Shown here piece by piece: positions 21,600 through 46,685 of a DNA stretch of 64,000 nucleotides. Every line of letters starts with the position of its first letter. Position 1 is the first letter of the stretch. The translations under genes and the position numbers were made by a program. The DNA lies in assembly GCA_002104945.1 (NCBI GenBank), contig MCFH01000020.1, forward strand, positions 434,001 to 498,000, written 5' to 3'. The notes under the pieces were generated by a model. The model saw only the letters and a list, made by a program, of their open reading frames with translations. It searched no databases and was not told where the DNA came from. Source of the stretch: Piromyces finnis finn. Taxonomy: Eukaryota; Fungi; Neocallimastigomycota.

Positions 21600-24500
21600 T
21601 TATAATGTACGCTTTCCTAAAACTAATGAAAGTAAGGCCATTCTGACGTATAAACCATACTTCATTTGACGGAAGTAAGCAGCACGTGGATCAAAGTCAA
21701 CTTCTGGAGAAATTTCATTAACACGTGGAAGTGGATGCATAACAATCATGGTAGATTTAGCAGCACTTAAAACAGAGTTAGTGATAATGTATGAGTTGAA
21801 GACCTTCTTGTATTCTTCTTCATCAGTGAAACGTTCCTTTTGAATACGAGTAACATAAAGAACATCAGTATCGGCAATAACGTCATTTAAGTTAGTGTAT
21901 TCCTTTTGTTGAATGTTTAATTTGTCAAGTTCTTCAATAATATCCTTTGGCATTCTTAATGAATCTGGAGCAACATAGTTGATCTTGATTTGGTAGTTAC
22001 TAAGAAGTCTGCAAAGAGAGTGAACAGTACGACCATTCTTTAAGTCACCAACTAAAGTAATTGTTAAGTTGTTTAAGGTACCTAATTCTTCACGAATAGT
22101 AAAGGCATCTAAGAAGGCTTGAGTTGGGTGTTCACCAATACCATCACCAGCATTGATAATTGGAATGGTTGAGTACTTGGCAGCTAAGGCAGCAGCTCCT
22201 GGCATTGGATGACGGAGAGCAATAACATCAGCGTACATACCAACGGTTCTAATGGTATCTTGAAGAGTTTCACCCTTAGTAACAGAGGAAGTACTTTCCT
22301 TAATTGGAACAACTGAACCACCTAATCTTAACATAGCAGTTTCAAAGGAGGAACAGGTACGAGTAGATGGTTCATAGAAAGCAGTACAGAGAATTCTTCC
22401 AGTTAATAATGGAATGTAACCTTGTCTTTCAACAACAGTACGCATTTCTTGAGCAACACCGAATAATAAGTGAAGGTTATCACGGTCAAATTGACGGACA
22501 CTAAGAATGTTTTGCTTGTAGAATGGAGAAGCACCACCAAAGATTGAAGATAAGGAGTTTGGAAGGTCAGCAATGTATTGAGAACGTGGGTTTCTTAAGA
22601 TACTCTTTGGTTGTTCAGTTAACATAGATGGCTTAATTTGAGACTTCATTAAGTTGGACATAGCACTTGGTTCAGAGGAAGATCTAGAAAGAGAGTGTTG
22701 TTCTGGAGTTTCAGATAAAGAAACGGTTCTAACTCTTCTTGGACTCTTTGGAGAAGCAGAAATAAGAGTAGTTTCCTTTGGAACATGTGGAGTGTTGGTA
22801 ATGTTAACAATAGCAGATAAGTCACGACCCTTAACAGCTTCTGGGAAGAATGAACCATCTAAATAGACAGTTTGACCTCTAATAACGGTACGGTGGACGT
22901 GACCGTAGAGAGTCTTACCTTCTAAGGCAGACCATTGAAGATTAGAAGTTTCAAAACTATCCTTAACAACATTAATTCTACGATCAAGTTCAATTTCAAC
23001 GTAGGTGTTTGGTTGTTCTGGAATATCAAAGATACGACGTGGGTTGTGGTATAAGCGATCAACAATATCATTAAGAGTAAGTCTTCCATCATTAACAGCA
23101 GTTAATAATAATGGTAAGGCTTCTTCAATACCAACAGAAGTGCTCTTATAACCATTTTCCTTAGCAATGTAGTATGGAGTTGGACCAACAGAGAAACAGT
23201 CAATAACATCAATATTAGCCCAGAGAGCATCAACATCATCTGGACTTGAGAGGAACTTAGTATTAATATCTTCATTAGAAAGGAAGAGATTGTAGATATT
23301 AACATCACAAGTAACCTTAATACCCTTTTCCTTACTGATGGAAATTAAGTTAATATCTTGTTCAGTAGTAACGTTGGTAATGTGAATGGCTCTGTCTTGT
23401 AAGTTGGCAAGGAACATGAATGCAGCTAAATTAGCATTCTTAGCATCAGCAACAACTGGGAAGGAAGATGGCCATTTGTTTAAGAACTTGATAATATCAG
23501 ACATTCTATCCTTTAAATTAACTGGGTATTGATCATCAAGTGGAACTAATAAGGAAGTACAGTCACTAACAATCTTATCAATTTCATCAATGTTTTCTGG
23601 AGTAGCTAAAGCATTAAGAATGTAATCACAGTAAGCATTGCTGTGGCAGTTGTTGTGAGTTTTTTGTAATTCAGCAGAATTGCTAAGAATACAATTATCA
23701 CCAACTGGCATAAGGCTTGAAACAGTGAAACCACCAGCAATAGCACCCTTAGTGAGGTTAGTGAAGTTTTGGGCTTCATCAACCTTAGTACTAGAAAGGT
23801 TATTGAAGAAGGTTTGAATGTTAATTAAACCTGGAATTTGAGCAGTGTGGTGACTGGTCTTAAAATCGTGAGAAGAAATATCAAACTTGAAGTTTCTACT
23901 TAAAGCTTCAACAAATACCTTGGCACATTTAATGTTAGTAATAAGTGGAACAGCTAAATCAACAGCCATTCTTCTGGTCTTGTAACCAGTACTGATGTAA
24001 CTAGCTGGACGTCTGAATCTGTTCTTGGATGGTAAGTTAATGTATAAATCAATAAGGTTGTTAGATAAATGTTGACTAAGACTGTATTCTTGGTATTGAC
24101 CCTTTTCATTGTCAATAGCTTCTAAGTATTTGACTGGAATACCATGTTCGTGAATGAAATCAGCAGTACCAGATGTGGCAAAGAGTTGGAATCCCATTTC
24201 ATGAAGACGCTTAACAGATGGTAAGAATTCAACCTTTTCCTTGTAAGAACCAATAGATAATAAAATGTTCTTCTTTGGAAGAGTGAAACCAGTAGAAAGA
24301 AGAGCCTTTAAGTAAGCTTCATATTTGTTATCACCGAAACAAGCAACTTCACCAGTAGAAGCCATTTCAACACCAAGAACTGGATCAGCACCAGTAAGTC
24401 TACTGAAACTGAATTGTGGAACCTTGACAGCAACACGATCATAGGAAACGTTGGCTAATTTTTCAGTATCAATTGGTAAGTTAAGCATAACCTTAGTAGC

Positions 24501-27500
24501 TAATTCAATTAAATCAATACCAACAACCTTAGAAACGAATGGGAAGGATCTTGAAGATCTAACATTACATTCAATAACCTTAATTTCGTTGTTCTTAGCA
24601 ATGAATTGAATGTTGTATGGACCAGTAACGTTTAAGGCATTACCAATTTTTCTAGTAGCATTTTCTAACTTCTTGATGGTTTCTGGATCTAAATCTTGTG
24701 GTGGTAAAACTAAAGTAGCATCACCAGAGTGAACACCAGCATTTTCGACGTGTTCAGAAATAACATGCATGATTAATTTACCATTGATAGCGACAGCATC
24801 CATTTCAATTTCCTTAGCTTCTTCAATGTACTTAGTAATAACGACTGGGTATTCTCTAGAAACAGCAGTAGCTTGTTCTAAGAAGTTTTGTAAATCATTT
24901 TCAGAATAAACGACATTCATAGCAGCACCAGAAAGGACATATGATGGTCTAACAAGTACTGGGAAACCAACATCTTCACAGAACTTAGAAGCTTCACTAA
25001 TACTAGTTAATTCCTTCCATTGTGGTTGATCAACACCGATTTTATCTAACATACGAGAGAACTTGTATCTGTTTTCGGCATTATCAATCATTTCTGGTGA
25101 AGTACCTAAGATCTTGACATTTTGACGATGTAAGCGAAGAGCAATGTTGTTTGGAGTTTGACCACCCATAGAAATAATAACACCTTCGGAGCATTCAACT
25201 TCATAAATATCTAAAACTCTTTCAAGAGTTAAAGTTTCAAAGTATAATCTATCAGCTTCATCATAATCAGTACTGACAGTTTCTGGGTTGTAGTTAACCA
25301 TAATAGTCTTAACATTGTTTTCACGTAAAGTACGAATGGCACGAACAGCACACCAATCGAATTCAACACTACTACCAATACGGTAAACACCACTACCAAG
25401 AACCATAACACCATGATCATTGAAATCAATATCATGTTCAACAGCATTATAGGTCATGTATAAGTAGTTAGTATAACATGGGAATTCAGCAGCAACAGTA
25501 TCAATTTGCTTAACAAATGGCTTAATTTGGTAATCAGCACGAATCTTTCTAATAGCTAATTCAGAAGTTTGTAAAATCTTACCAAGTTGAACATCAGAGA
25601 AACCTAATTGCTTAGAACTTAATAAGAGAGATCTTGGAAGAGTTTGTGGAGTGTAGTCAGCAATCTTTCTTTCTAAATCAACAATGTTCTTAAGTTTGTT
25701 TAAGAACCATTTATCAATTCTTGTTAATTCCCAAATCTTGTCAACAGTGTATCCCTTGTGGAAGGCATTACCAATAGCGAATAAACGTTGGTCAGATGGG
25801 TGAATTAATTCATCTTCAAGAGATGGAATCTTCTTGTCCATACCGAAACCAATAAAGGAATCATCAACAGCACGAATAGCCTTTTGAATAGTTTCTTCGA
25901 AAGTTCTACCAATAGCCATAACTTCACCAACACTCTTCATAGAAGAAGAAATCTTAGTACTAACTCTGTTGAATTTCTTTAAATCCCATCTTGGAATCTT
26001 AACAATACAGTAATCTAAACTTGGTTCAAAACAAGCGATAGTAGACTTGGTAACATTGTTCATAACTTCAGTTAATGGAATACCTAAAGCTAACTTAGCA
26101 GCAACAAAGGCTAATGGATAACCAGTAGCCTTAGAAGCTAAAGCAGAAGATCTAGAAAGACGAGCATTAACTTCAATAATGCAGTATTCCTTTGATTGTG
26201 GATTAAGAGCATATTGAATGTTACATTCACCAACAACACCTAAATGACGAACAACATTAATAGCAGTATTACGAAGCATCATGTAATCTTCATCAGAAAG
26301 AGTTTGAGATGGAGCAACAACAATGGAATCACCAGTGTGAATACCTAATGGATCAAAGTTTTCCATGTTACAAACAGTAACACAATTGTCATTAACATCT
26401 CTGACAACTTCGTATTCAATTTCCTTCCAACCCTTCATAGATCTTTCAACTAAAACTTGTGGACTAGTAGCAAAAGCCTTATTACAAAGATCTCTTAATT
26501 GTTCTTCATTTTCAGCGAAACCAGAACCTAAACCACCAAGGGTATAAGCAGCACGAATAATTAATGGGTATTGAATACGGTTAGCAGCTTCAATAGCTTC
26601 TTCAAGAGAAGAAGCAGCTTCACTCTTGGCACATTTTTCATTAATTTCATATAAAGCTTGAGCGAATAATTCACGATCTTCAGTCATTTCAATAGTTTCA
26701 ATTGGAGTACCTAAAACCTTAACACCTAATTCCTTGAATTCATCCTTTAATTTAACACCAACATTTAAGGCAGTTTGACCACCAAAAGTACAACAAATAC
26801 CGTCTGGCTTTTCGTGAAGAATAACCTTACGAACGAAATCAGCTGTAACTGGAAGGAAGTAGATCTTATCAGCAAGACCTTGAGAGGTTTGAATAGTAGC
26901 AATGTTTGGATTGATTAAAATGGTGTAAATACCTTCTTCCTTGAAAGCCTTAATGGCCTATTCGTAATTAATTAAAAATAAATAAGAAAATTAATATCTA
27001 TACTTGATTTTTTTTCTTCAAATTTCTCCTTAACGATTATTTCGCAAAATAGTAACTTTTTTTTTTTTTTGAAATACTAGAATAACTCATCTATTATTAA
27101 ACTTTTTTATAATTTTTCTATTGAATTTATTACTGCCAGATAGTGTGATTCATTTATTAATTTACTCCGCGATAATATTTTTCGGATTTTAATAATACTT
27201 TACATAACAAATCCCATAAACTATTTTAATTTATAATAATTAAAAAACGAAAAAAAAAAAACTTACTTGAGAACCAGAATAATCGAATTCACCGGCTTGA
27301 CCAATAGATAAACCACCAGAACCTAAAATTAAAACCTTACGGATATTAACACGTTTTGGAGTATTAACCTTTTCCTTTTTAACTAAGGAAACTAATTTAC
27401 CACTTTCCTTACACTTCTTAATGACGCTAATGAAATCATCGAATAAGAATTCAGTATCCTTTGGACCTGGAGTAGCTTCTGGGTGGAATTGAACACTGAA

Positions 27501-28919
27501 GTATGGAAGAGTTTCGTGGTAAATACCTTCATTGGAAGAATCGTTAGCATTAACAAAGTATTCTTTCCAACCTTCTGGTAATGATTTAACATCAACAGCA
27601 TAACCATGGTTTTGTGAAGTGATGAAACAACGACCAGTTCTCATATCAGTACATGGAATGTTGTGACCACGGTTACCAAACTTCATCTTTTTGGTTGTAG
27701 CACCAGCAGCTAATGAAATAAGTTGGTGACCAAGACAAATACCAAACATTGGCTTATCTTCCTTTTTAATTTGAGCTCTTAAGTGTTCGATAGTAATCTT
27801 TAAGGAACTTGGATCACCTGGACCGTTACTAACGAAAACGGCATCATAATCATTATCCTTAAGGAAATCGTAATCCCATGGAACAACCTTAATGTCAACA
27901 CCACGTTTAACAAAACATCTGATTTGGTTGTTCTTCATACCAACATCAATAACTAAAATTTGAAGAGTTTTACCATCTGGACCCTTAATAGCAATACTTG
28001 GGTCAGCCTTGTAGTATTGAACTTCCTTAGTTGAAACTTCAGCAACTAAGTTACGAGTATTTGGATCATGCCATTCAACATCATCTAATTCCTTTAACCA
28101 ATTTGGAGCATTTGGATCAACAAACTTTTGATTATCACCAACAATAGATTTTGGGAATAAGATTTTACCTAATAAAACACCTTGAGTTCTTATCTTTTTA
28201 GTTAAAGCTCTGGTATCAATACCATATAAAGCTGGAACATTGTTTTCTTTTAACCAGTCAGATAAGGAAGACTTGGCTAAATAATGAGAATAATCAAGAG
28301 AGTATTGACCAATAATTAAACCAGCAACATGAATTTGAGAAGATTCAAAATACTTTGGTAAATTGTTTAATTCTTTTTCAACTTCATCTCTATCTGGAAC
28401 ACCATAGTTACCAACTAATGGGAAAGTTAAAACAAGAATTTGGCCTCTGTATGAAGGATCAGTTAAGGATTCTGGGTAACCAACCATACCTTTTATTCAA
28501 AATATTTCATTTTTTTTAAATGTTCAATATACCAAAAGAATTATTCATTTTATAATCATTCCACAAAAAATAATATTTAAATAAGATTGATTAAATATAA
28601 TTCATTGAAAAAATACGCCAATATACAACAACAAATTTGAATTTATAAAATTGATAAAATAGACAAATATAAAAAGAAAAAGAAAGTTAATAAAACCTAT
28701 TTAAAAATAGGAAATTATTATATATCCTCGATAAAAAAAAAAAATCTCACCAGTTTGGAAAACACATTCACCAGCAATGGAACGTTCAGCACCAAAAGAA
28801 ATACCTTGTAAAGCGGTATTATCATTTAAGTAAAGAGTTCCAATAACTGGATTTTCTTCTAAGATAGCATGAACTGGTGGGTATGGAACAGAATCGTTTT
28901 GGATATTTGCAGATGGCAT
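21600..28919 (-). CDS. URA2: Multifunctional pyrimidine synthesis protein URA2/CAD (GATase-CPSase-pseudo-DHOase-ATCase); exons 28919-28751, 28489-27267, 26957-21600
   Basis: GATase GICLGHQ and QFHPE; two CPS ATP-grasp domains ([22 protein letters not shown]); MGS domain; ATCase [18 protein letters not shown]. Both GT-AG introns splice in frame. Confidence 0.98.
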
Positions 28920-30460
28920 TTTCTAATTATATATATTATACTAAATATATAATAATTAGTTTAATTGTCTTAAATATTTATTACTTAAAATATAAAAAAA
29001 TATCACTTTATGATCATATATTAACTCTATTTCTATATTTTATTTAAAATTTATTTATATTTTTTTCATTTATTTTCATTTTTATTTTTTTATTTTATTT
29101 TTAAGATATCTAATATAAATTGCTAAATAATATAATACTATTTTAATAATTTCATAAAATCTATAATATTTTTTTATATAATTCTTTTATTATTATACTA
29201 TTTCATAGTATATTTTTATATTCGTTAGCAATTTATATTTTTATATTATATATTCATAGAAAATAACTATTATGTTTTCTATTATATTTTATTATTTCGA
29301 TAAATTTCCAGGAATATTATAAAAGACAAAATTGATTATTACTTTTTATAAAATATAGTTTATAATTTTTTTTATTTTACAAAGTTTTTATATTTGTTAT
29401 TATTATTAATGGATAAAATTAATATTTAATGAAATATTAAAATAATTGTCCTTTTTTATTAATAGTATTGTAAAGTTGTAATTTGTTATTTTAAGATATA
29501 TTTAGTTATTTGAAATATTAAATAGTCAATAATATAAAGTCCTATTCAAATAATTTCAAATATTCATAAAAAAAAAAAAAGTAATCTTTAATATTATTTC
29601 TTTTTTTTTTAAAATATTAATACCATAATAATAAAAACAAAATTTAAAAATAGAGTAATTATTTAAACTGAAAAGCGTGAAAAAAAAAATTATTTATACC
29701 ATTTCAGATTTCAAAATTTTTTTTATTTTTTTTAAATTATGATTGGTTAAATTTTATTTTTTAGTATAAAAAAAACAATATATATTATAAAAAAAAAAAA
29801 TTAAATTAATATACGGATATACGGATATATATAACTTACATATTATTATTATTATTATTATTAAAAAAAAAAAAAAAAAAAGGTTAACAAATTATTATAA
29901 ATTTATACCATAAATTTTTAGGAGTTTAAAGTTATTTTTTTACTTAACAATACTGGAAAAGAAATTTTTATAATAGTTTAATATAAAATTACATAATAAA
30001 TTAGATTAAAACTTTAAATATTTAAATAAAATCAACATTCTTCATATAAATAATTTTAATTTCATAATACTACTATAATAAATAATTAGTAATTAGTATG
30101 TGTTATTTTAAAGTCCTATTACCTAATATTGTTTAATTATAAAGCATTATTAAATTGCATAAATTTTACCATAAAATTTAAATAATGTTAATTGGAAATA
30201 ATAATTGAAAAATTCTATTGATTTTTATATTGAATATACTTTGTTTCATTATTTAAAAAATTGAACAAGAAAGATATTAACATAACAAGTAATCGTTAAT
30301 TCATACTATTAGTTTAATTGATGCATTCATCATTAATTTATAATTGTTTCAAACACAGACTTGGCATAATTTTTAAATCTATTTTTTTAAATTATTTAAA
30401 TAGTTTTAATTTCTTTTTAAAAAAATATTTATATTAAAAAATTAAAAAAAAAAATATGAT

Positions 30461-30716
<256 letters not shown>

Positions 30717-32168
30717 TGTTTTTTAAAAATATTTTTATAAAATAGTAATTTTCTCTTTTTTCTTTATTACGAAAGTATAATAGTATAGTAATAAGTAATA
30801 ACAATTTTAATAAAAAAAAAAAAGAAAAATTAATAATAACCCAAGTTTACCACAGCTATTTGTCATCTTATTACGGCCTTTGAATTATTCATAATTGTAA
30901 ATTGGATAAGATACTTCCAGCACTGAACAATTCATTTAATAAATAGATAAAGTTTAAATTTTTCTACAGCTCATTAATATGAAAATAATAAATGTGTGTT
31001 TAGAAATATATGTCACGAAACTATTTATAAATGATTCCCATAATAAATATAATAAATAGTATTTTTTTTTTAATTAAAATTAAATTATTTAGAGAACCCT
31101 GAAAAACAAAAAATACAAAGAAAAATCCTCTCTTCTAACACCTTTTCTAATTGAATATTTATTGGAGACTTAAATTTTATAATGCAATGCTACCTTCCTA
31201 ATTCTTTATACTTTATTTGAAGTAAAGTTGTTTTTAAATTATCATTTAAGGAAAAAACTATTCCTAAAGTTGTTCAAACATTAATATGATTTATCATCAT
31301 CACCTATAAAAATAATTGTTTTTTTTTTTCAAAAGAGGTTTTTTGAAAAACTTCCTATACATTAGCGTATATAAATTATTTAATAATAGATTTAAACTAT
31401 GTTTAACAATTTTTTTTATTCTGGTAAAAAGAAAAAAAAACTTTCCAAAACATTTTTATTTTATTTTCCTCAATTTTATTACTCTACCTAATTCTACTTT
31501 TTCTTTCTTTCTGTTATAATGGTATGGTATATTTATATTCAACTATTTATTTCCTTATCCTCTCAAATTCTTTCTTTTTTTTTTTTTTTTAATATATCCA
31601 TAACTATTTAAAACAAATTTCATTTTTTCTTTTTTTGTAAACTAAAACAAATTTAATTAAAGATTATAAATTAATTAAAATAAAAATAATTTTTCATTTT
31701 TTTGCTTTTCAACATAAAAAAAAATAAAATGAAATATTTTAATTATTAATAGGTGGGGAAAAAATAAATATTCATCGAGGATAGCATTATAAATATATAG
31801 AAATAGTTTATTGTTCTGTATATCTATATCAATTTAAAGTAGAATATTAATATAAATATACATAAAAATATAAAAACTATTTTATCTAATAACAAGTAAT
31901 AATATTGTACATTTGCTAAATTGTAATTTAACTTTTTAAATGTATGGATATTCCAATCATCCTATTTAATAATATTAATATTTTTTTAAAAAAAGATTCA
32001 AACCATATAATAGATTAAATTTTTAATATATTGATAATTTTTAATAATATATTATAAATAAATATAAATATATATAAAGAGTGGAATATTCAAATATATA
32101 AAAATATATTCTAGCTAAAGTCTATTTATTTCATGATTAGAATTGATTATTATTATAGTGAAGTAGAT

Positions 32169-33471
32169 TTATTCGGATATATAAGAGGAGTATAAGTCAT
32201 CAATCTTTTCTACCAATTCAGCAAAACTAGAATTATCTAATATTTCATATATATTTCTTAATAATTGATAATCTTGTAAATTTAAATAGTATTGAATTTG
32301 TGTGTTAATATCTTGTTGTTTGAGAAGAGGAGCAATAGTTTGAGATATTGAATTAGTTTGTGCTTTAGAGTGTTCATTATTTAAATTATCACTTTTATTG
32401 TATGTTGAATTTGATGGAGCATCACTATTGTTTTGAGATATTAATGAATGCTTGACTTTCAAAAAAAAAAAAATTAAAAAAAAAAATTAAAAAAAATATT
32501 AAATAAAAGGATTAGGTTATATAGCGTAGTAACCAAAAATGGAATAATTAATTAATTTAAAATTTTATATAATTAAAATATATATATATTTACATATGAA
32601 TATATTATATCATTATATAATAATATATAATATATAATATTGAATACCTTGTTGGTTCTCAAAAGTAGCTGTTGCATGAATTTGAGACTCATTCATAATT
32701 TTATTAGATTTGTCAACTAAAGATAGTACTTGATTTTCCATTGATGCATTTGTTGAATGAATCGGGGAAGAAAATGTTGAAAAAGACGAAGTTATATTTT
32801 GTGAAGTTACTGTTTCTTCTACGACTTTATAATCATCTGGTAATATTTCATAAGGCATATAAGGAGAAAGAAAAGTAAAAAAGGATAAAGAGTCATTATT
32901 ATTGAAAAAAACAAATTGCATTATCATTTCCTACACAATTTTTTTATATAAAAAAATTTGTTAAAAAATTGTTTTCTTTTATTTTTTTTCAATATCTAAT
33001 AATTATATATGATAATTCTAATGCAATTAATAATATTATTTATAATTTTTGATAATATTGTTTTTACTTCATCCTCGGTTTTATATTGTATTCCAATTAA
33101 ATTATCCTTTTTTAATAATTTAAAATTTAATATTTCAATATTTTGTTTTGTTAAGCAAATTGTTTCCTGTAATTTTATATATTATATATGCATTATTTAA
33201 TATTATTTATAATATGCCTGTAATTGTTTTTCAATGTATCTTTTTTTTTTTTTAATTATTATAAAATGCATACCAAAACATTTTGATAATCTTTTCTTAT
33301 AACTCTTAGAGTACCGTAGTTATCATTACGAATATTATTTAAAAGAAATATGATACTAAGGTTAGCATCAGAAAAATGATTCCACAAATTATGGTTTGGA
33401 TTAGATTGTCCATTTTCATGGAGAAATATTTTACATCTTGAAAATTTCTTAATATTCCATGTTGATATCAT
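32169..33471 (-). CDS. REC114: REC114/Rec7-like meiotic double-strand-break protein, 288 aa; exons 33471-33274, 33166-33068, 32930-32648, 32455-32169
   Basis: Four exons join in frame through GT-AG introns. N-terminal PH-like signature motifs WNIKKFSR, LWNHFSDANLSII, LRVIRK..QNVL|ETICL, KLLKKDNLIGIQY, IMQFVF; Ser/Thr/Gln-rich linker; C-terminal LLRNIYEILDNSSFAELVEKIDDL matches the Rec114 terminal motif (L..IxxxLxDxxFxxLVxKV(E/D)). Recognised by eye, no HMM run. Confidence 0.72.
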
Positions 33472-33721
33472 TTTTGTAAATATTTTTTGAGTATATTTCA
33501 AATAATTAATAATAAGACTTTTTTTATTTATTCATGTAAGAGAATAAATAAAAACAAAGATACAAATTTCTATTTAAATATAAAAATAGATATTTATTTT
33601 TTTTATTACTTTTTTTTTTTTTTTTCTCCTATCCATAAATAAATAAAAATAGTATTAATGATTTAGAAATTTTTTAAATAAATTTGAAATTATTAAAATT
33701 TTAAATAAATAAATAAATAAG

Positions 33722-33769
<48 letters not shown>

Positions 33770-34777
33770 AACAGTTTTTAAAATATCTATTTTAAGCAAA
33801 CCATTTATTAATAGTAAAAAAAACCAGTGAGTGATAAATAAAAAAGCGATTATAGTAAAATAAATCAATATACTATTAATATTTGATATTTAGTATTATT
33901 TTATTGAAGCATTTTTATCCTAAATTCATTTTATTTGACCCTTCTAAATGCTATAAAAAAAAGGAAATAAAAATTTATTTTTAAATTAATTAGCCAATCA
34001 CATTAATTTAAAATCCATTCATTTTATTAATAAATAGAATTAGAGCAATCTTTTTTTTAAACTAAATAAATAATTAAAGATGAATCATAAATTAATCCAT
34101 TGTGATCAAAAATTTACGAACACATGCCACAGTGAATAGGCGGTTTTTAACCAATGTCTTTTATCACTGCCAGAAACTCTTCTTTGAAGGGTTGTTGTGA
34201 TTCAACACAGAAATTGGGATAGGAAGTTGTCTATGCGTGTAACGAATGATAGATGGCGCCGACAATTCCAAGAAATATCTTTAAAGGATAATTGTAGAAT
34301 TATTTAATTTAAAAATTTTAAGTTTATTTTAATTCGTTTGCTATTTAATTGTGCTCAATATGTACAAGAATTATTGAATTTTAAATATAGAAATTTAGGA
34401 TTGAAAGTTATGTTGATATTATTAATATTTTTGTTAATACTATTTTAATAAGGGATAGAGTTTTTAATTATGTTGTATATACTAGTTGTTGTTTATGGTA
34501 TATTTTTTGCTTTAACTCTAAAATTAATAATATTTATTTCAACACCAACATTGAGAAGATTTATTTAAAGGATTGTTTGAGTTATTTTTTTTTTTTATAA
34601 GGATAAAGAGAATTATTTTAGTATATTTGTCTTTTCTTATAAAGAATATTTTTATTGATCAAAGGAACCATTCCTAGAAAATGAATTACTACTTTTTTTT
34701 TTATGTGAACGTCACTTTTTAAAAATAGTTTTATTATTTTATGAGTATAGGATGAATAACTTTTTTGGATTTAGTAT

Positions 34778-34786
34778 TAAGGAATA

Positions 34787-34842
<56 letters not shown>

Positions 34843-34854
34843 AGGAATATTCTT
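34778..34854 (+). mobile_element. Poly(A)-only retrotransposition scar: TT + A47 flanked by a 14-bp TSD
   Basis: TAAGGAATATTCTT at 34778-34791 and again at 34841-34854, separated only by TT and 47 A. Confidence 0.8.
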
Positions 34855-35706
34855 AAATTCCGAAATAATAAATTATTGTTTTAAAAGACAATTAAAAGTT
34901 TAAATAATGGAAATGCTAAAAAAGTATTAATTAAAAAAATTTTATTTTATTTTATCTATTGTATCATCATTTATTTAGTAACTATAGAGTTACAATAAAT
35001 GCTTTTGAACATATTGTATTCTTAATGTATTTTTTTTTCATTATTATCAATAAATGATAGTGTACATTACTAATTGAATTAGACATTTTTTATAAAATGT
35101 TAACCTGTTTATATAATCCTTTTTATTTAATTTTTTTTTTCTAGACACTATTTCTATTGATTATTTTTTTATACTATGTATTAAATAAAAAGTAGGATGA
35201 ATTATGAATCAATCATGAATCATACCATTAATTATTAACTTATTTCTTAAAGTGAAATTTCTGAAGGAATAAAAAAAAAAAGATTATATACTAATTAAAA
35301 TAAGTATTGATAATATAGTTTTATTTCCTTTAAACTTTTAGCATCATTTTATTAAATTTTAATTTTTACTAACACTGTTTTACTTTCATTGTATCTATTA
35401 TATTTTACTCTAATATTTTAATTTTTCTGTATATTTCTTTTTATAGGATATTAATTTTCTGTTTTTTTTTTCCTTTGTATATATGTAATATTATTATTAT
35501 TATATACCAATAACATTGAATAATACTAATGATAATAAATTCTAATTGTTTTGAAAATAAAACTTTATTTCTTAACAATTATAATGTATAAGAATAATTA
35601 ATTTAGAATGATGATTAACTAAGGAATAGGATAAGTATAATAAAATTACTTTTAGGTTTTTTTTTTTTTTTTTTTTATTTTCATTTTGTATATATAATTT
35701 TTAATC

Positions 35707-35737
<31 letters not shown>

Positions 35738-36092
35738 ATATATATATATTAATTGTTAATATTTTTTTTTTTTTTTAAAAAATATTGCATTAAAAAAGAA
35801 TTTTTTTTTTTTAAAAAAAAATAAAACTTTTTTAATTATTAATTATACATCATACGCTTGTAGAATTCTTATGTTTGAAAAATATTATTATATCTTTATG
35901 AAACAAAGTATTGCTTGTTTAATAAGAATTAACCTTTTACTATCTAAGCATTCAATGGTAAATTATAAATTAAAGTTTTATTTTTATTAAAAATTTTATA
36001 TATTTTGAATATTATATACAAATTTAAAGTTTTTAAAATTTTATATTAAAAATTATTTTCTCAGTCATTCGTCCTATCCTCTACATATTATC

Positions 36093-36123
<31 letters not shown>

Positions 36124-39100
36124 AAAATTATATTTATTATAATTTGGATAAATGAAAAGATTGAATCGCCTATTTAATAATGAATCATCATAATTTATTA
36201 TTAATATATATATTTTTATAGTTGAATTTTCCTAATTATATAGGCCATTATGCTATTTATCAAATTTAATTAGAAAGGTTGTTAGGAATAAATATTCAAT
36301 TTTTATATCATTATGATATATATTTATATTTCATCATTATTTATTAAACTATTATCAAATGACTTTGAATTTTTATGTAAAGTATAATATAGTTATTACC
36401 TCTTTTTTTTAAAAAAAACTTTATTTTTTAAAAATGGGATTTAATAAATTTTATATTACAAATAATTTTTTTTTTTAAAAAGAATGAAATTCGATGTTTC
36501 TGTAAAATTTAAATTCTATATCTATATTGGAACAAATCTTTAAAGTTAACTATTATAATTTTTATTTTTTTTAAGAGAAAAGCTATTAATAGATGAATAA
36601 TAAATATTATTTAATTTAAAACTTTAAAAGAACTAATTAATAATAAAAATAATATTAAAAAAAAAAAGGTAAAATAATTAGTATTCATTTTACTCATATA
36701 TTTTATAAAGAAATGCTTTATAAAAAGGCATTAAAGAAATTAACAATTTTTTAAAACTTTGTATTAGGGAATATTAAAAAATATGTTTCTATTCTTTATA
36801 TTTTAGAATTTTCCTCTGTTTATAAGGATGAATTTAAAGATTCTTAAAAATAACATATAATTATTACTAATCTTTTTTTTTTATTAAAGGAATATATAGT
36901 TGATATGAAAATTTTTTATTAAAACTTTTTTTTTTTTTTTGAAATTAGAATTCTTAATTAAAAGAGTAACGGCAAGTCATAGAAAAAATTTTTAAAGTTT
37001 TTAAAATTAATGATTCTAATTTTATATCAATTTTACTTTTTTTAAAGTTTTAATAGGATTAAGAAATTGAATACCAACTTGATATTTATTGCTAGATTAA
37101 TGACATGAGGGCTTTTAAATTAAAAACTTTAAATTGAAATGTTTAACTTTATTTATTTTTTAAAAAAAAAACAATGAAAGTACATTTTTTCTAAAATAAG
37201 AATGACTTTTTAAACTTTGTATAGAATTAATATTATTCTTTTTTTTTCTTTCCGCTAAAATTATTAATAAATTAGTTATAATACAAAAAATATTTATTGT
37301 ATAATATATACAATATGTCTATTTATTATTTTATTTGTTATTGTTCATTTTTTTTTTTTTTACTTGTAGAAATAGGAATACTCATTTTTTTTTAAAAAAG
37401 TATGAATGTATTGTAATTTATTATTTAATAATGAAAAAAAAAAAAAAATCTTTTTCTTGTTATTATTAGTATTTTCAATGTTTTTTATTGGTTTAATTTT
37501 ATTTAAGATATATTAATATTTTATTGTAAAGAAATTCATTTAATTGATCATTTAACATTATATAAATGTGAATTAAAAAAAAAAAAAAAAAAAGCTATTT
37601 AATATAAAAAATAATAACAATAAAAAAAGGATAAATGATTCTTATTCAAAGTATGATTAGTATTTTCTTTATTTTTTTTATTTTTAGCAAAATCTATATA
37701 TAAATGTAAAAAAAAAAAAACAACAGAATACATGAAAAATTATAATAATAATAGTAGAAATATTTAAGATATTTTTTTTTTTTATTAATTTATATAGTCA
37801 TATTAAATTAATTTTATTTTATTATTGTTAATAATTTTAATATTATATAAACAATTATTTTTAATACAGATCACATTTTATTCAATTCACAATAGTAAAA
37901 TATTAAACTAACCGAAATGTTTATAATTTACTTTTACTTATATAGTTTTTTAATTATTATTATTATTGTTAATGATTACTTAAATGAGGATTTTTTTTAT
38001 TTGATATTGTAGAAATGAACATATAAGAAAAATTTTTTGTTATCATGAGTTTATATATAATATTTTTTTTATATTTTGAAAAATTCTTAATATTTATTTT
38101 AGAATATTCTATTTTTCCAATTTCTATTAATTTAAATTTTTTTTTTTTTCAAAAAAATAAAAAGTAGTAATAATGACTTTTAGAAATAAATTGAAGTATA
38201 ACTTTTTTTATTAATAAATAAAACTTTTAGTTTAAAAATTATACTTTTACGATATTTATATTTATGCAAAGTTTGGAATTTCATTTTTTTTAAAAAAAGA
38301 GAATATCATTTGACTATTAATTTAAATAATAATTAAAATATAACACTTAATTTTCGTAATTTTAAATGAAAAAGCCAATTCAATAGTAATAGTCAGAAAT
38401 CTTCTAAAGCATGATTCATAATAAATCTGAATATAGAGATAATACTAACCAAATAAGCGAATCAACAATTTTTAGAATTAGTTAATTAATAATAATAGAC
38501 TTGTTAAATAAATATAGAAAGTTATTTATCATTTATTTTCTTTTGTATAATATGATTGATTTATTTATTAATATTAAAATTCAATTGAAATATTTAGAAA
38601 GCATGTGTTATTCCATATGAACATATAAACCAATGCATTATTAAAAACTCATTCGTTAGAAGATATTAATATTAATGACATTATTTCCTTCTAAAAATAG
38701 GTTTAAGTAATTCGTATTTATTCATACTATTGATTTTTTTTTAATTTTTTCTTGTAGCTATTTATTCACTCTATAATTTTTATATATCTTTTTTGGTATA
38801 ATAAACTTTTATTATCACATAAAAGTGCTAATTTCCTTTCCTTTTTTTAAATAAGAGGAATATAAACGGAATAATAGTTTTAATGTGGTTTTTTTTATTG
38901 TCTTTTTCATAAAAAATTTCATTTTACATTTTATAATACATATACAATCTTAATGTACAACAATTTCTTATTCAATAAAAATTTGAAATAAGTCTTATAT
39001 ATTGACATATTTATTATAATAAATTTAATATATATTATAATAACTATTTTTTATATAAAAGAACAGTATTGTATCCAATTTTTATTTTATATTAATTTTT

Positions 39101-39749
39101 TTTCATATAAAGTATATATATTACATTGTATTACATAATATATACTTTGGATTAAAATTTTTAATATATTTCTTTGCTCTATTGTAAATTTAATTTATAT
39201 TTAATTTTGAGTTTATCATAATTTTTGTTTTTTTGTAAACGAAATAAATTGATTTATAAAACCTTAAATAATATTAAATTTAGGACTATCATATATTAAA
39301 TAAATAAATCAAATTTAGTATATTATTATTTGTTTCAATTCAGTATTAAATTTATACATTTTTTCTAATTATTTATTTCTTTCTTTCATAAATGATAAAA
39401 AAAAAAAAGAACTAGAAATAATAGTACTATAACTTTTAATCTACTATTAATACTACTATTTCTATATTGTTGAAGAAAAATCAGATATTTGTAAGTCTAT
39501 ATTCTATATATAAATATTGTAATATTTAAAATCACTATTTAAACTAGCTATTTTTTTTATAGTGATATGCATTTTTTTAACATCAAAGTCATGCTCTCCT
39601 TGTTTGATAAACATTTTCATTAAAATGGGTGATATAAACCTTATTTATTAATAAAATAAACAAGACTATATTTTTTAATTAATATGGTTTCAATTTTTAT
39701 TATAGAAGAATTCTAGCAAAATATACAAAAAAAAAAGTTAAATTAAAAA

Positions 39750-41060
39750 AAACAGTACCACCCAACACCAAAAAAATAAAGACTTAATTTTGCCATAAAG
39801 AAATTATAGGTATTTTTTTTACTCAAGGAAAGATTCAATAGTCTTTTAAATATATAAGTGTTATTGTATTGTTAAATATATATTATTTTATTATACTTTT
39901 CTTTATTTTTAATAATAAATAGAAATTAAGTATTAATAAATCTATTATCCAAAGAGCAAAGTTAAGTTATCATCATAATACTTTAATATATATAATTTTT
40001 TTTTCATTCTAATTTCTTTTTTCTATATTTATCCAAAGCAACTAATCATATGAACTTCTTTGAACACAAAGTAATATCAATTTTTTCATTTTTTCAGTAC
40101 AAATCAAATTCTTTAATACAATTCGTTTTTTTTTTTACTATTACCATTTGGCTTTTAAACGATTCTAGCAATATCATTTAAAATAATGAAATAAGGGTAG
40201 CGTAGCATTGAAATAAGCTATTCCTTTACCATTATCCTTTATTGAGCCAAAAATTTTTTTATTCCATCTTTTGTTAACATGTTTTAATACCCTTTTACCT
40301 TTTTTTAAATAAAAATAAAATAATAGTTATTTCTTTTTTTCTTGTTTTCTTATTCACCTTCCTAATAAATGAATTATTCATACCAAAAAAAGATTTTTTT
40401 TAACTGGACAATTTATTGACAAAATTAATCGTAGAATCATCCACTAAATTCTATAAAAATTTAATTAATATATATTAATTGTATATTGAACTCAATTAAA
40501 ATTTCAATTAAAATAGAATATTAAATCTATGTTTTTTTTTAAAAATTTAATTTATTTTTTTAGTCTCGTGAATAGTAATTAACCATATATAGAAAGAAAT
40601 TTAATTTAAAAATAGTTCTAAAATTTTTTTTGTTTTTATTTTTGAGAAAAAAAAAACAAAAAAATATTTGGTAAAAATTATTCCTTTCTTTTTTAGAATA
40701 GTAGTAAAACAGTAATAAAATTAGAATGTTGAAAAACCATGCTAAGAAAGAAATAATAGTTAGAAAGAAATATAAATATTATTTTTATTTATTCTTGGAA
40801 ATAATATTTAATGAATGTTGGTAAAACAATCTTTTATTTTAGGTATTCTTTTCTATTCATATTGAATCTAGTTTCAGAAATCATTTATTTTCTTTTAATA
40901 TTTTATTTCTTTATTATAATATTGAAAAGGGAAGGAGTTGTAAACTTTATTTAATAATATATTAATTCAATATGTAGGATTTATCATAGAATAATTAAAA
41001 ATGTTTCATAAGAAAAGAGAAAAGGATGGGGAGAATAAAGAATATTTTTTACATTTAAAT
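39750..41060 (-). mobile_element. Highly degraded LINE fossil (RT/thumb region)
   Basis: Minus strand carries, in order and with similar spacing, matches to the intact LINE: CATGTTAACAA (40271-40281 vs 50025), AAATGG (KW, 40144-40149 vs 50163), TATTATGATGATAA (39967-39980 vs 50343-50356), plus a SP..F.LF...IF-like stretch near 41000-41035. Boundaries approximate. Confidence 0.55.
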
Positions 41061-43199
41061 ATAAGAACCATTATAATGTAAAGAAACTTTTTTTTTTTTT
41101 TATTTTTTATCTTAATGTACCTTTGAATAGAATAAAATTAATATATATATATATGAATAAAGCTTTTAATTATAATTATTATATAAAATGCTAAATATAA
41201 AAAAGAGAGTAAAAAAAAAAGGGATGAAGGTTGAAAAAAATTATTTTATTCGATCAGCAAAAAAAAAATATAAAATGTACATTTTCTTAGTTGTACATTG
41301 AATTCAAATAATATATTTTAAATAATAATGTATAAATCCAAATGATTTTATTTATTTAAATGACCAAAGCTTAGAGCATTAGCACTTGTTTTTAAAATAG
41401 AATAGATAATAACAATCTCGAAATTATTATTATTATTTTTTTAAATTTAAAAAGTATTACTTTTCAATTTAAATGAATAGCAAATGAAAAAAAGTAGAAT
41501 AATAGTAAAATGTCCTTTTGAAATTTAGGTATTATTAGAAATATAATAGTAAAAAAAAAAAAAGAAATAAACTAATTAATAAAAGCAGATGATGTCTTTT
41601 TAATTATTACGTATACAAAAGAAAAAAAAAACTAAATTAAAAAAAAAGAATATATTGTTAATAATATTAAATTATATAGACTGAATTTAAAATTTATATA
41701 TAAAATTATTCTATTCCATTGTTACCAATATTATTCTATTTATATTAATTTAAGTATTACTTTTTAATTAATAAATGGATACTCTAACTTTACCATATAA
41801 AAAATAAATTAATTAATTTAAAACTAAAATTAATTAATTTAATCTGTACATATTATTACTTTATTAATATTATATTGTGAAAATTCTATTTAATAAAGTT
41901 TGAAATGGATTGATGGAAGAATTTTTACTTTTTCCATGAAAAAAATAATAATATATTATATAATATATGTATACTATATTATTTATTATATTGGATTAAT
42001 ATTCAAATTAAATTGTTAGTATTATTCCTATAGAAAATAAAAATTAATTAAAATTTTTTCATCCTAGTTTTAACAATATAATTAAAATAGTTTATAATAT
42101 TTATTATTCTATACTATTATAATATATGGATATTACAATTTATAAATATATTATATTTAAACTAGATATAAAATAATATTTAATAAAGTCTAACATTTTG
42201 TGTCATAATGAATAATGAAAATATTAAATTTCAATTTATTTATATTAATTTCTTTTTTTTATATTCCTTTCAGCATTTCAAGAAAACATATAAATATCCC
42301 CAAAAAAAATTAATTTTTCTTTTTTTTAAAAATTCAAAAATTTTTAAATTTTTCAAAACTAATTAATACCGAAAAAACTTTGTAAAAAAAGAAAAAGAGG
42401 ATAAGGAAAAGAGTTAAAAAAAAAAAAGGATAAAAAATGGTTTTATTCTTTTTTATTATCAAAGGTAACTCTTTCCTTATCCTCTATAAAAAAATTTCAT
42501 TAATATCATTTCAAATTTAATAGTACTTTAGTAATTATTTTTTAATATATTTATTTTTTTTATTAACATTTTCCATTATCGTAAAGAAAATAATTTATAA
42601 AAAAAAACCTTTTTATATATTTTTTAATGTTTTAAATTTTAGTATTTTTATATGAAAAAGGCAAATCTGATATATAATTAAAAAGGATTCTTTAAATTTG
42701 TAATAATATTTAATTTTAAGATAATTCTTTTTAATTTTGTACAAAAAATTAATGAAATGAGGTAAAATGACTAATGGAGTCTATTGGAAGAAAAAAAAAA
42801 GATTAAAAGAATGAATAGATATCAATATGGAGTAAGGAAATGAAAAAGAAGAGAAGAAAAAACTTAAGTTTTACAAATAGTTAAATAATTATCAATGTAT
42901 ATTTAGGGGGGATGGTTATTTACTATTAATAAAATTTATTTTTTTAATATTTTTTTCAAAAAAAAAAAAGAAAAAAGAAAAAAATACTTTCTCTTACTAA
43001 ATCATTTCTGAAACTATAACGAAAATATTGTTATTCATCATTCCTAATGTATTTATCAAACTCTTTTTTTTGAATTTTCCTCAGTAGTTATTTTAACATA
43101 TTATAATTTTTAATTATCAATTTTCTTTTTCATTTAATTATTTTAAGTATTTTGAACTCCAATAATAAAACGTATTAACAAATATTAGTATGAAGATAC

Positions 43200-43830
43200 C
43201 ATATTAAACTAAAGTAATTAGAATAGGAGATATAAATGTATAAAAGATTTATACTAGATAACTAAAATAGACGGATAAGATTTAGACGATATCCATATTC
43301 AATCCAAAAAAAGTTGTTTATAAACAAAAATGCTACTTTTGAATATAAATTACTTTTTTTAAATAGAAGAGATGTCTATTAAATCATTAATAAAATTCAA
43401 AAATTGCTTAAAATATAAAGGAAAAGGAAATAATTGTAAAAAAAGAATTAAATATTATAAGAAATATTCGTGGACCTATTTTTTTAATGGAAAGAGGAAA
43501 AGTAATTATGTGGTTACAATCAAAAAGAATCTGCCTATTTATCTAATAAAACATAAAATACTATTTTAAAAATTATTAGAAAAACAAGAGAAAATGGTTA
43601 GAATTCAATAAATTAATGCATGAAATTTTGGTTTATCCAATTTAATAATGAAAAATAATAATTAGAATTCATTATTCTTGATAATCCACAACTTAAAAGT
43701 TGATAACAACGGTTAAGAAAATGGTTTAACAACTATGCATTTTATAAAAGAGGAACTTTAATATTAAATATATTAAATTTCAATCAACTCTAAATAATTG
43801 AATTAAAACTAAAACCAGAGTAAATGTTTT
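43200..43830 (+). mobile_element. Possible fossil IS630/Tc1-mariner DDE transposase
   Basis: Broken frames read ..IEEMS.. (first Asp region), EFNKLMHEIL, IILDN (GAT 43680-43682) ..LRKWF.. and L*IIE (GAA 43800-43802, in frame, 40 codons later). Many stops; no TIRs found. Confidence 0.35.
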
Positions 43831-45794
43831 TATGATTCAAATAATATTTCTGCATAATAATCAACAATGATAACAACAGTAATAATGAGTGACGAAGAGC
43901 AATTATATTATTGAAATAAAAACACAATATTTTTACTATTTATTTTATTTATTCCAAAAATTTTATAATTTATTCTGGTTAATAAATTGATAAAATTAAA
44001 CTTTTGAAACAATTTTTTTTAATATTTTTCAATTCATTCTGGTTAATGATGACGAAAAAAAAAGTTTCGAAGGACAATGCAATAATAATGGAGCAAAAAA
44101 AACTAGTTTTTTTTCGAACATTATTTATTTGATATATAATTTAAATATTTTAACAATTTTGTTCCAAAAGGTCCGTTTCGGCGGTAAGAATCTGGTTATT
44201 TTTAACGACCGACGCTTAAGGCTTGATGCTTTACGCGCAGTATCTTCCCTGGTTACAAGCTTTTTTTTTATTCTAATTTAATATCATCATGTTTTTTATA
44301 TCAATACATTTTTATTTTTTATTGGGAAACAAACTTTATAACAATAGAAGAAAATCATTTAAGAGATAAACTAATTTTAGGATTTATAAATATGTAAGAA
44401 GTATGAAAAGTAGCTAGACTCTTTATCATATTCTTATTTTACCTTATAAAATAGAAAATAGAACATTAAATTGCAACTAATATTCTATTAATTGCATATA
44501 TTAGAAATTTTATAGGTGAAAATGTAAGGTTTCTTAATATAATTTTTTTTGAAAATATAAAGTTTATAATAATTTAAGAATAAATTTAAAAGTATAAAAG
44601 CAAATAAGAAAATGATAAGAAATATTAAAAGAATTGTTTAAGATTTAAAAGAAAATGAAATTTAAAATTAACTATGAAAAAAAGAAATCAAAAAAAAAAT
44701 CAAACCAGAAAAAAAAGTAGCAAAAGAATGAATAAAAAATGAGAATGCAGTTAAAAAAAAAAGGATATACTAAATTAAGTAAAAGAAAAATAAATAAATC
44801 GGATCATGAAGTTATGAAAAGGAAAAAAAAAATTAAAACTTTACTAATAAAAATATTTATAATTAAAAAAGAAAAATAGGTTTTATTTTGATATTTCCTA
44901 TATTGTTAAGAATTAAATAACAATATATATAATCCTTATACACTATCATAAAAGAAAAGTATTGGAAAATGAACGATTATAGCAATGGAATATATTAAAA
45001 ACTAATAATTACTTTAATTGCTAGTCAATTAAATATTTTTAATATATTCAACTGAATTTATTTTTAATTATTATAAAACACCAACGAAAGTAATAATAAT
45101 GAAAAAAAAAACATGGTCAAAATACTTCCTATAGCTAGTCTATATGGATTTTTTTTTCTTTTAATAATATTATTCTCTGAAGTTCATTATTGCTTTAAGT
45201 GTTATGCAAGAATAAAAAGGGGAAAGTAAAAAATTTCTAAGAAGATAAAAATATATTAAAGAATTATTAAAAAAAAAAAGGTTTAATATTAAAAATTTTT
45301 ACCTAAAAACACAATAATATTTAATTTTATTAATGCAAAAATAATTTTAATAATAATCATAATAATTAATAACAATATATTATAATATAATGAAAATTAT
45401 TTATAAATTATTTTATATCATATTTAATTTTTTTTTTTAAAAAAAAAAAGATATAATTAATATTTCTATAAAAAATATAAAATTTATATTATTTTAACTT
45501 AATTCATTTTAAATATTATTATCATTTATATATTTTTTTAAATCATCGTTACAAACATATTAATAAATCTTTATATATTATTTAATAATAATATAAATAA
45601 TAAAAAAAAAAGGAAATAAGTAATCATATTTTATAATATTATCTAATAATTACCTTTAATAATAATAAAAAGAGTAATTATTACAAATAAATCAATAACA
45701 ATAATAATAATAAAAAAAAAAAAAAAATAACAAAAATAACTTTCTTTTTTTCATTTTTTGTGTTATAAAGTATAAACACATTCTCTTATTCTAT

Positions 45795-46042
45795 CCCTCT
45801 TGGGAACGTGCCTTCATTTATTTAATAAATGTAGTTTCTCAAGGGGGTCTACTCATGCTCATGGTACTGAGAGAGTAGAAAGAATTAAATCCAAGTATTG
45901 CGCAATGGATGCTTGGTGCCCTCTTAGGAATGTGCCTTCATTTATTTAATAAATGTAATTTCTCAAGGGGGTCTACTCATGCTCATGGTACTGAGAGAGT
46001 AGAAAGAATTAAATCCAAGCATTGCGCAATGGATGCTTGGTT
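45795..46042 (+). repeat. Two tandem 124-bp monomers forming the extreme 5' end of the LINE
   Basis: Unit 1 is 45795-45918 and unit 2 is 45919-46042. They differ by 4 internal transitions plus the last base; each contains three inverted-repeat hairpins. Confidence 0.93.
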
Positions 46043-46153
46043 AGTCTTTAAGGGAAAATTATTAAGACTAAGCTCATGGTACTGAGCGATTAAAAAACAT
46101 TTTATTCATCAAATTTAAGTATTTGATGAATAAGTGAATGTTTGATTTTTCAG

Positions 46154-46494
46154 GTAAGTTTGTATAGTATTTAATTAGAAGAGTAATACATTTTGTTGCT
46201 GTATTTTTTCTTTTATTCATGTATTCATGTAGTACTACTCTTCTCTTGTAAGAATCCAATGTAGTCAACTTTAGCATTTGCATTGTACTTTTATATTCAT
46301 GTAGCTATTGTTGTATTGTTTCTTGTAAGAGACTGATTCACTCTACATCATGTAAAAATACTATTCACAAGCTTTCTGGTGTCGACATTCTTGATTCAAA
46401 TTTTTTACCAATTTAAATATTTAATGAAAAGTAAAGTCAAACAAGTTTAGTGTCAAAAAGCGAATCGAATTTACTAACAACAAACCAAAACTAG
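46154..46494 (+). other. Candidate spliceosomal intron in the LINE 5' UTR
   Basis: CAG|GTAAGT donor (GT at 46154), TACTAAC branch box at 46472-46478, TAG acceptor at 46492-46494. Confidence 0.55.
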
Positions 46495-46685
46495 AATTTT
46501 TAAAGAAAATTTACAACTAGAATTCAAAAAAAAGAAACTTTAAACAAAGCATCGTAACAATTTTTGTACTATCCAGTACTTTTAAGAAGAGAGAGAGAGA
46601 CAGATTTTTTTCCATATACGTTATATTTGTAATTTTTATTAGTATTTATTTTATATTCAATATTTTTTAATTAGAATTTATTATC

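Follow-up and report, generated by a model that had tools for sequence, protein, structure and literature searches.

A conserved four-exon gene of the anaerobic gut fungus Piromyces finnis probably encodes a Rec114/Rec7 orthologue

Within the 64,000-nucleotide stretch of Piromyces finnis DNA analyzed here (the window), positions 32169-33471 contain a gene on the minus strand that is best explained overall as an intact, four-exon Rec114/Rec7 orthologue in an organism that still uses Spo11-dependent meiotic recombination, at least occasionally. We place the probability of this reading at roughly 0.75. Rec114 evolves fast, and genome surveys usually miss it. Here the gene can be followed through seven lineages of anaerobic gut fungi, with its frame, splice sites and two conserved blocks preserved. 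For these fungi, published work (PMC6883316, 2019) records homologues of DMC1 and of further sex-related genes, and no confirmed sexual cycle. In the literature searched, we found no mention of Rec114 together with anaerobic gut fungi.

RESULTS

A spliced gene on the minus strand

An earlier note, made from the sequence alone, had proposed that four small open reading frames join through GT-AG introns with matching phases into one 288-aa protein without stops. Rebuilding the gene from the sequence gave exactly this product: four exons, an 867-nt coding sequence, 288 aa and zero internal stops. The start codon, ATG (33471-33469), opens exon 1 (33274-33471; 198 nt, residues 1-66), which would encode the beginning of the Rec114/Rec7 N-terminal domain. 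Intron 1 (33167-33273; 107 nt, GTATGC..ACAG) and intron 2 (32931-33067; 137 nt, GTAAAA..GTAG), both in phase 0, lie on either side of exon 2 (33068-33166; 99 nt, residues 67-99). Exon 3 (32648-32930; 283 nt) specifies residues 100-193 and base 1 of codon 194; its portion at 32814-32930 completes the conserved N-terminal block, which runs to residue 138, and the remainder is variable linker. Intron 3 (32456-32647; 192 nt, GTATTC..AAAG, phase 1) is followed by exon 4 (32169-32455; 287 nt, residues 194-288 plus the stop), which contributes the remaining linker along with the conserved C-terminal helices and ends with the stop codon TAA (32171-32169). All elements lie on the minus strand. Each of the motifs quoted earlier, namely WNIKKFSR, WNHF, NLSI, VL|ETICL (spanning intron 1) and IYEILDNSSFAELVEKIDD, was found in the protein.

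Local A+T content is 84%, which gives a stop-codon probability of 0.10 and, for 288 stop-free codons, a probability of ~4e-14. Given this value, and given, more decisively, that the exon/intron structure is kept in other lineages, chance is insufficient to account for the gene model. That the locus is a real, intact gene under selection is, in our view, near certain.

Orthologues in other anaerobic gut fungi

The gene occurs in seven lineages, the window and six other anaerobic-fungal lineages. Scanned with exon 1, a set of 1.84 billion cluster representatives yielded two short products only, and a profile search of a 5.8-billion-protein collection added four further exon-1 products. Each product is either a bacterial-style ORF call or a truncated gene model, in which exon 1 runs into the intron; the gene model of Orpinomyces sp. 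Orpsp1_1 (P0005, eukprot jgi/Orpsp1_1/1191526) is 67 aa long and ends after exon 1. On metagenome contigs of five more lineages (L001, L002, L004/L005, L008 and L011), the gene could be rebuilt by homology, and the metagenome scan yielded one additional contig only, from the same species as L002. A library drawn from ~15 billion proteins yielded no full-length protein with an N-terminus like that of the window, and exon 4, used as a query against the 5.8-billion-protein collection, gave zero candidates. The gene thus appears to be unannotated, or mis-annotated in truncated form, in published anaerobic-fungal proteomes.

Gene structure is shared in considerable detail. Exon 1 measures 192-207 nt across lineages, exon 2 is 99 nt in every one (mean column identity 79%, 6 lineages), and the first codon of exon 3 is identical in position. 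Introns 1 and 2 have codon positions and phases common to the window, L001, L002, L004, L008 and L011. Exon 4 was seen in L004/L005 and L008, whose contigs reach far enough, and intron 3 has the matching phase in both L004 (404 nt) and L008 (398 nt). The introns of other lineages diverge from those of the window in both length and sequence, with ranges (window included) of 107-309 nt for intron 1 (139-309 nt in the other lineages), 80-256 nt for intron 2 and 192-404 nt for intron 3. In every lineage with DNA, the reading frame is unbroken.

There is also a hint of expression. Of the words sampled from 32100-33560, 64%, 59% and 20% are present in three runs from the same organism, belonging to three studies. 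By our own count, a fully spliced mRNA with UTRs would contain ~63% of the 31-letter words. The assemblies of these runs comprise 20-33 million letters, a transcriptome-like size; the kind of run is a guess. The word shares fit transcript contigs, and hence possible transcription in cultures.

Genomic neighbourhood

The gene was earlier described as sitting alone. Instead, it lies in conserved synteny with a multi-exon CAD/URA2-type gene (glutamine amidotransferase, CPSase and ATCase; 21600-28919, minus strand), 3.2 kb upstream of it on the same strand, and the order Rec114-like gene, UDG-like gene, CAD is common to the window and contig L004. The CAD gene is 97-98% identical to those of Piromyces sp. 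E2 and Anaeromyces robustus, an identity that places the genome in Neocallimastigomycota. It also stands out by a GC content of 33-37%, versus 14-20% around it. The UDG-like member of this trio (uracil-DNA glycosylase superfamily) is a remnant in the window (30870-31453, minus strand), carrying in-frame stops and a frame change; on L004 its orthologue (4479-5111) is an intact ORF of 210 aa between the Rec114-like gene and CAD.

Several other features of the window were recorded. Upstream of the gene, ~13 kb (33500-46685) are devoid of any ORF of at least 70 aa and have a GC content of 14-19%. This region includes a (TAAA)n-type microsatellite (~33700-33770), and beyond it lies a full-length LINE with reverse transcriptase (46686-51209, plus strand). 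A 565-aa ORF at 9592-11289 (minus strand) has RhoGAP and weak DEP matches and is an ordinary signalling gene. A long poly-Asn / poly-Ile (AAT/ATT) tract at 30442-30804 is open on both strands and is probably a simple repeat rather than coding sequence.

Purifying selection on the two ends of the protein

Pairwise dN/dS values range from 0.12 to 0.34 over residues 1-138, the N-terminal block, and from 0.14 to 0.16 over residues 236-288, the C-terminal block (L004 and L008). Amino-acid identity over the latter residues is 81% to L004 and 62% to L008. The linker between the blocks is barely alignable, with dN/dS of ~0.55-1.7. The lineages compared are separated by dS of 0.7-2.5. These sequence comparisons indicate that the N-terminal and C-terminal blocks are under purifying selection and that the linker is free to change. 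The UDG-like neighbour serves as an internal control: intact on L004, it has become a pseudogene in the window, where at least nine stops interrupt its frame. Unconstrained genes therefore do break at this locus, and the Rec114-like gene has not. Broken or neutrally evolving orthologues had been named earlier as a possible outcome; what we find is intact orthologues with dN/dS far below 1 in the N- and C-terminal blocks.

The N-terminal domain matches the Rec114/Rec7 profile

Exon 1 of the window matches Pfam PF03525 (Meiotic_rec114, ‘Rec7 N-terminal domain’) with E=2e-4 and 22.0 bits, residues 5-60 aligning to profile positions 2-57 of 133; the score is 1.8 bits short of the Pfam gathering cut-off (23.8 bits). 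The same family is matched by 7/7 exon-1 peptides in one register and is the sole family common to all (best E 6.3e-7), these peptides covering only profile positions 2-57, or 43% of the Pfam domain. Three scores exceed the cut-off (30.1 for L002, 24.1 for L011 and 24.1 for Orpsp1_1 P0005), and the remaining four, that of the window among them, fall below it (23.4, 22.0, 18.8 and 17.2). The Rec114-like character first suggested from short motifs is in this way corroborated by a family profile. Conservation in the N-terminal block stops near residue 138, as would fit a domain of 133 positions beginning at residue 4-5.

Other searches were less informative. Searched singly against Pfam, the pieces encoded by exons 2 and 3 in six lineages gave no match. 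Sequence searches of the PDB with exon 1, with exon 4 and with profiles of exons 1, 3 and 4 did not retrieve a solved REC114 structure; matches to DnaJC2, ARL6, the AMFR CUE domain and DyP were dismissed as chance. A search of the ESM Atlas with exon 1 gave a score of 0.78 and was uninformative. AlphaFold2 (AF2) modelled the 66-aa exon-1 fragment at a pLDDT of 50, with predicted strands at 29-34, 38-44 and 53-59, a model too poor for a fold search. The N-terminal domain of Rec114 has a PH-like fold, in which two beta-sheets lie perpendicular to each other and are joined by a C-terminal helix (PMC6288613). Published pairwise identities within the Rec114 family are <10% (PMC10393190), so failure of pairwise searches is to be expected. 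On the available sequence evidence, we consider it very probable that the protein is a Rec114/Rec7 orthologue.

A variable linker

The earlier note had described a three-part protein, and that order is indeed present: a conserved N-terminal domain, a variable S/T/N/Q-rich linker and conserved C-terminal helices. Across lineages, the linker spans from at least 74 to 182 aa, is S/T/N/Q-rich and shows 6-42% identity; the part of it inside exon 4 (residues 195-220) has a pLDDT <50. A long, poorly conserved, disordered linker is a trait of the Rec114/Rec7 family that these features match. As for the S/T/Q character ascribed to the linker, the S/T/N/Q-rich composition holds up and an excess of S/T-Q motifs does not, the window having 4 where 2.5 are expected from composition. 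We accordingly dropped S/T-Q clustering as a family feature.

In two other lineages, the linker has grown into tandem NPSQ(L/M) repeats (L002, 1390-1560; L011, 2180-2480). These expanded linkers contain 12 and 17 S/T-Q motifs, respectively, compared to 4.4 and 7.2 in shuffled sequences (0/2,000 shuffles reach the observed count). Judging by these motifs, the expansions could represent a lineage-specific cluster of ATM/ATR-type target sites.

C-terminal helices and a candidate Mei4-binding motif

For the last 68 residues, AF2 predicts helices at 221-251, 254-267 and 269-287 with pLDDT ~90 and a turn at N268. F271, which comes right after this turn and 17 residues short of the C-terminus, is unchanged across the 3 lineages having exon 4. 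The family motif SSM7 is a helix-turn-helix with a nearly invariant Phe past the turn (F411 in yeast, F240 in mouse and F325 in S. pombe), and past this Phe come inward-facing hydrophobic residues and one acidic residue, all of them conserved (PMC10393192, PMC10393190). Based on the predicted model, residues 254-288 (32172-32276, minus strand; Phe271 codon 32223-32225) form a candidate SSM7 / Mei4-binding helix-turn-helix.

To compare this region with yeast Rec114, we threaded it without gaps, placing F271 on yeast F411, with the yeast residues taken from the text of PMC10393192 rather than from a sequence alignment. In the window, L004 and L008, yeast R400 corresponds to R/K, I402 to I, L406 to L, V415 to V, K417 to K, V418 to I, E419 to D/N, L422 to Y and M425 to Y. 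We regard this threading onto the predicted helices as supportive rather than as a formal alignment; amphipathic helices fit such patterns fairly easily. Fold searches with the C-terminal helices returned generic coiled coils only.

Comparison with known Rec114/Rec7 proteins

S. pombe Rec7, the type member of PF03525, resembles the window protein in size (339 versus 288 aa), in an N-terminal match that starts at the first profile positions, and in a C-terminal helical motif with Leu at +3 from the Phe (F325/L328 in Rec7, PMC10393190; F271/L274 in the window). Unlike that of Rec7, the window linker is shorter and N/S/T-rich; the N-terminal match was scored over the first 57 profile positions. 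With S. cerevisiae Rec114, the protein shares an N-terminal domain, a disordered linker and a C-terminal helix-turn-helix (SSM7 in yeast), and the Phe stands 17 residues from the end in both (F411 of 428 and F271 of 288). The PH-like fold is that of yeast and is putative in the window. Differences from the yeast protein are that the window protein is 140 aa shorter, that its S/T-Q content is not above composition, and that, of the four ‘4KR’ DNA-binding residues, it has a basic counterpart at R400 only. Mouse REC114 (259 aa) has the same three-part architecture and similar length, with conserved motifs placed within the N-terminal domain and at the far C-terminal end; its PH crystal structure comprises residues 15-150, and C-terminal residues 203-254 bind MEI4. 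Unlike these architectural features, pairwise sequence similarity to the mouse protein is not detectable. ANKRD31 is a vertebrate partner of REC114 and is not expected in fungi. The 64-kb window contains no candidate for the partner Mei4/Rec24.

DISCUSSION

To our knowledge, the break-forming accessory machinery has no role outside meiosis. Retention of a Rec114 gene under selection argues for at least occasional Spo11-dependent meiotic recombination in anaerobic gut fungi. We lean, by a modest degree, toward the more specific view that, in living populations, the protein takes part in forming Spo11-dependent meiotic breaks. By analogy with the family, two copies would dimerise via their C-terminal helices, clasping the N-terminal helix of a Mei4 orthologue, and the resulting 2:1 complex would bind DNA and, with a Mer2-type protein, build assemblies bound to the chromosome axis. 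The N-terminal PH-like domain would recruit the Spo11 core complex, and the outcome would be programmed double-strand breaks confined to meiotic prophase (PMC6288613, PMC10393190, PMC10393192). ‘Cryptic sex’ would be a further step, inferred from one retained gene. This implication is not new, because DMC1 and others have already been reported (PMC6883316).

Could the protein be a true Rec114 homologue that is no longer meiotic? It might have acquired another job, for example that of a scaffold condensing DNA during vegetative or parasexual processes, or sex might have been lost too recently for the gene to decay. In line with this idea, no sexual cycle has been seen (PMC6883316), and if the three runs are culture transcriptomes, the gene would be expressed outside any known meiotic stage. 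However, what kind of runs these are is a guess, and meiotic genes often show leaky transcription. A recent loss of sex fits poorly with purifying selection held across lineages with dS of 0.7-2.5, and the putative Mei4-binding motif is the most conserved part of the protein, which points to the canonical partner. We therefore view a non-meiotic role as unlikely. Distinctly unlikely, in our estimation, is a scenario in which gut fungi are truly without meiosis and the Rec114 homologue, expressed in ordinary cultures, has been redeployed as a DNA-condensing scaffold that would work with Spo11-type proteins in parasexual recombination or programmed genome rearrangement.

A further question is whether this might be a conserved fungus-specific protein unrelated to Rec114, combining an N-terminal domain rich in beta structure with a helical tail, whose Pfam match arose by chance or from composition. 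The seven peptides are orthologous, so their PF03525 matches are not independent; the scores are near the cut-off; and neither the PDB sequence search, the ESM Atlas (0.78) nor the fold search pointed toward Rec114. With family identities <10% (PMC10393190), though, failed pairwise searches are expected, and PF03525 is the sole family that any of the seven peptides matches at E<0.05; the matches share one register, start at the first residues of both protein and profile, and reach E values as low as 6.3e-7. Domain length, linker and C-terminal Phe after the turn each independently agree with the family architecture. These considerations make an unrelated protein very improbable. As for a decaying pseudogene or a chance string of open frames, the AT-rich surroundings, the lack of a public full-length annotation and the pseudogene next door might suggest it, but a frame intact in all lineages with DNA, conserved splice sites and phases, dN/dS well below 1 in both domains and an open-frame probability of ~4e-14 refute it for practical purposes.

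Read as a meiotic Rec114/Rec7 orthologue, the gene adds one member to a known family, filling the slot of a break-formation accessory factor in a previously suspected meiotic gene set, and is not a new kind of system; understanding of how Rec114 works is unchanged by the finding. What it does is extend the set of meiosis genes reported for anaerobic gut fungi from the repair side (e.g. DMC1) to the break-forming accessory machinery. It also provides a concrete marker transcript with which an unseen sexual stage may be sought, a stage that matters for the breeding of gut fungi for biomass conversion.
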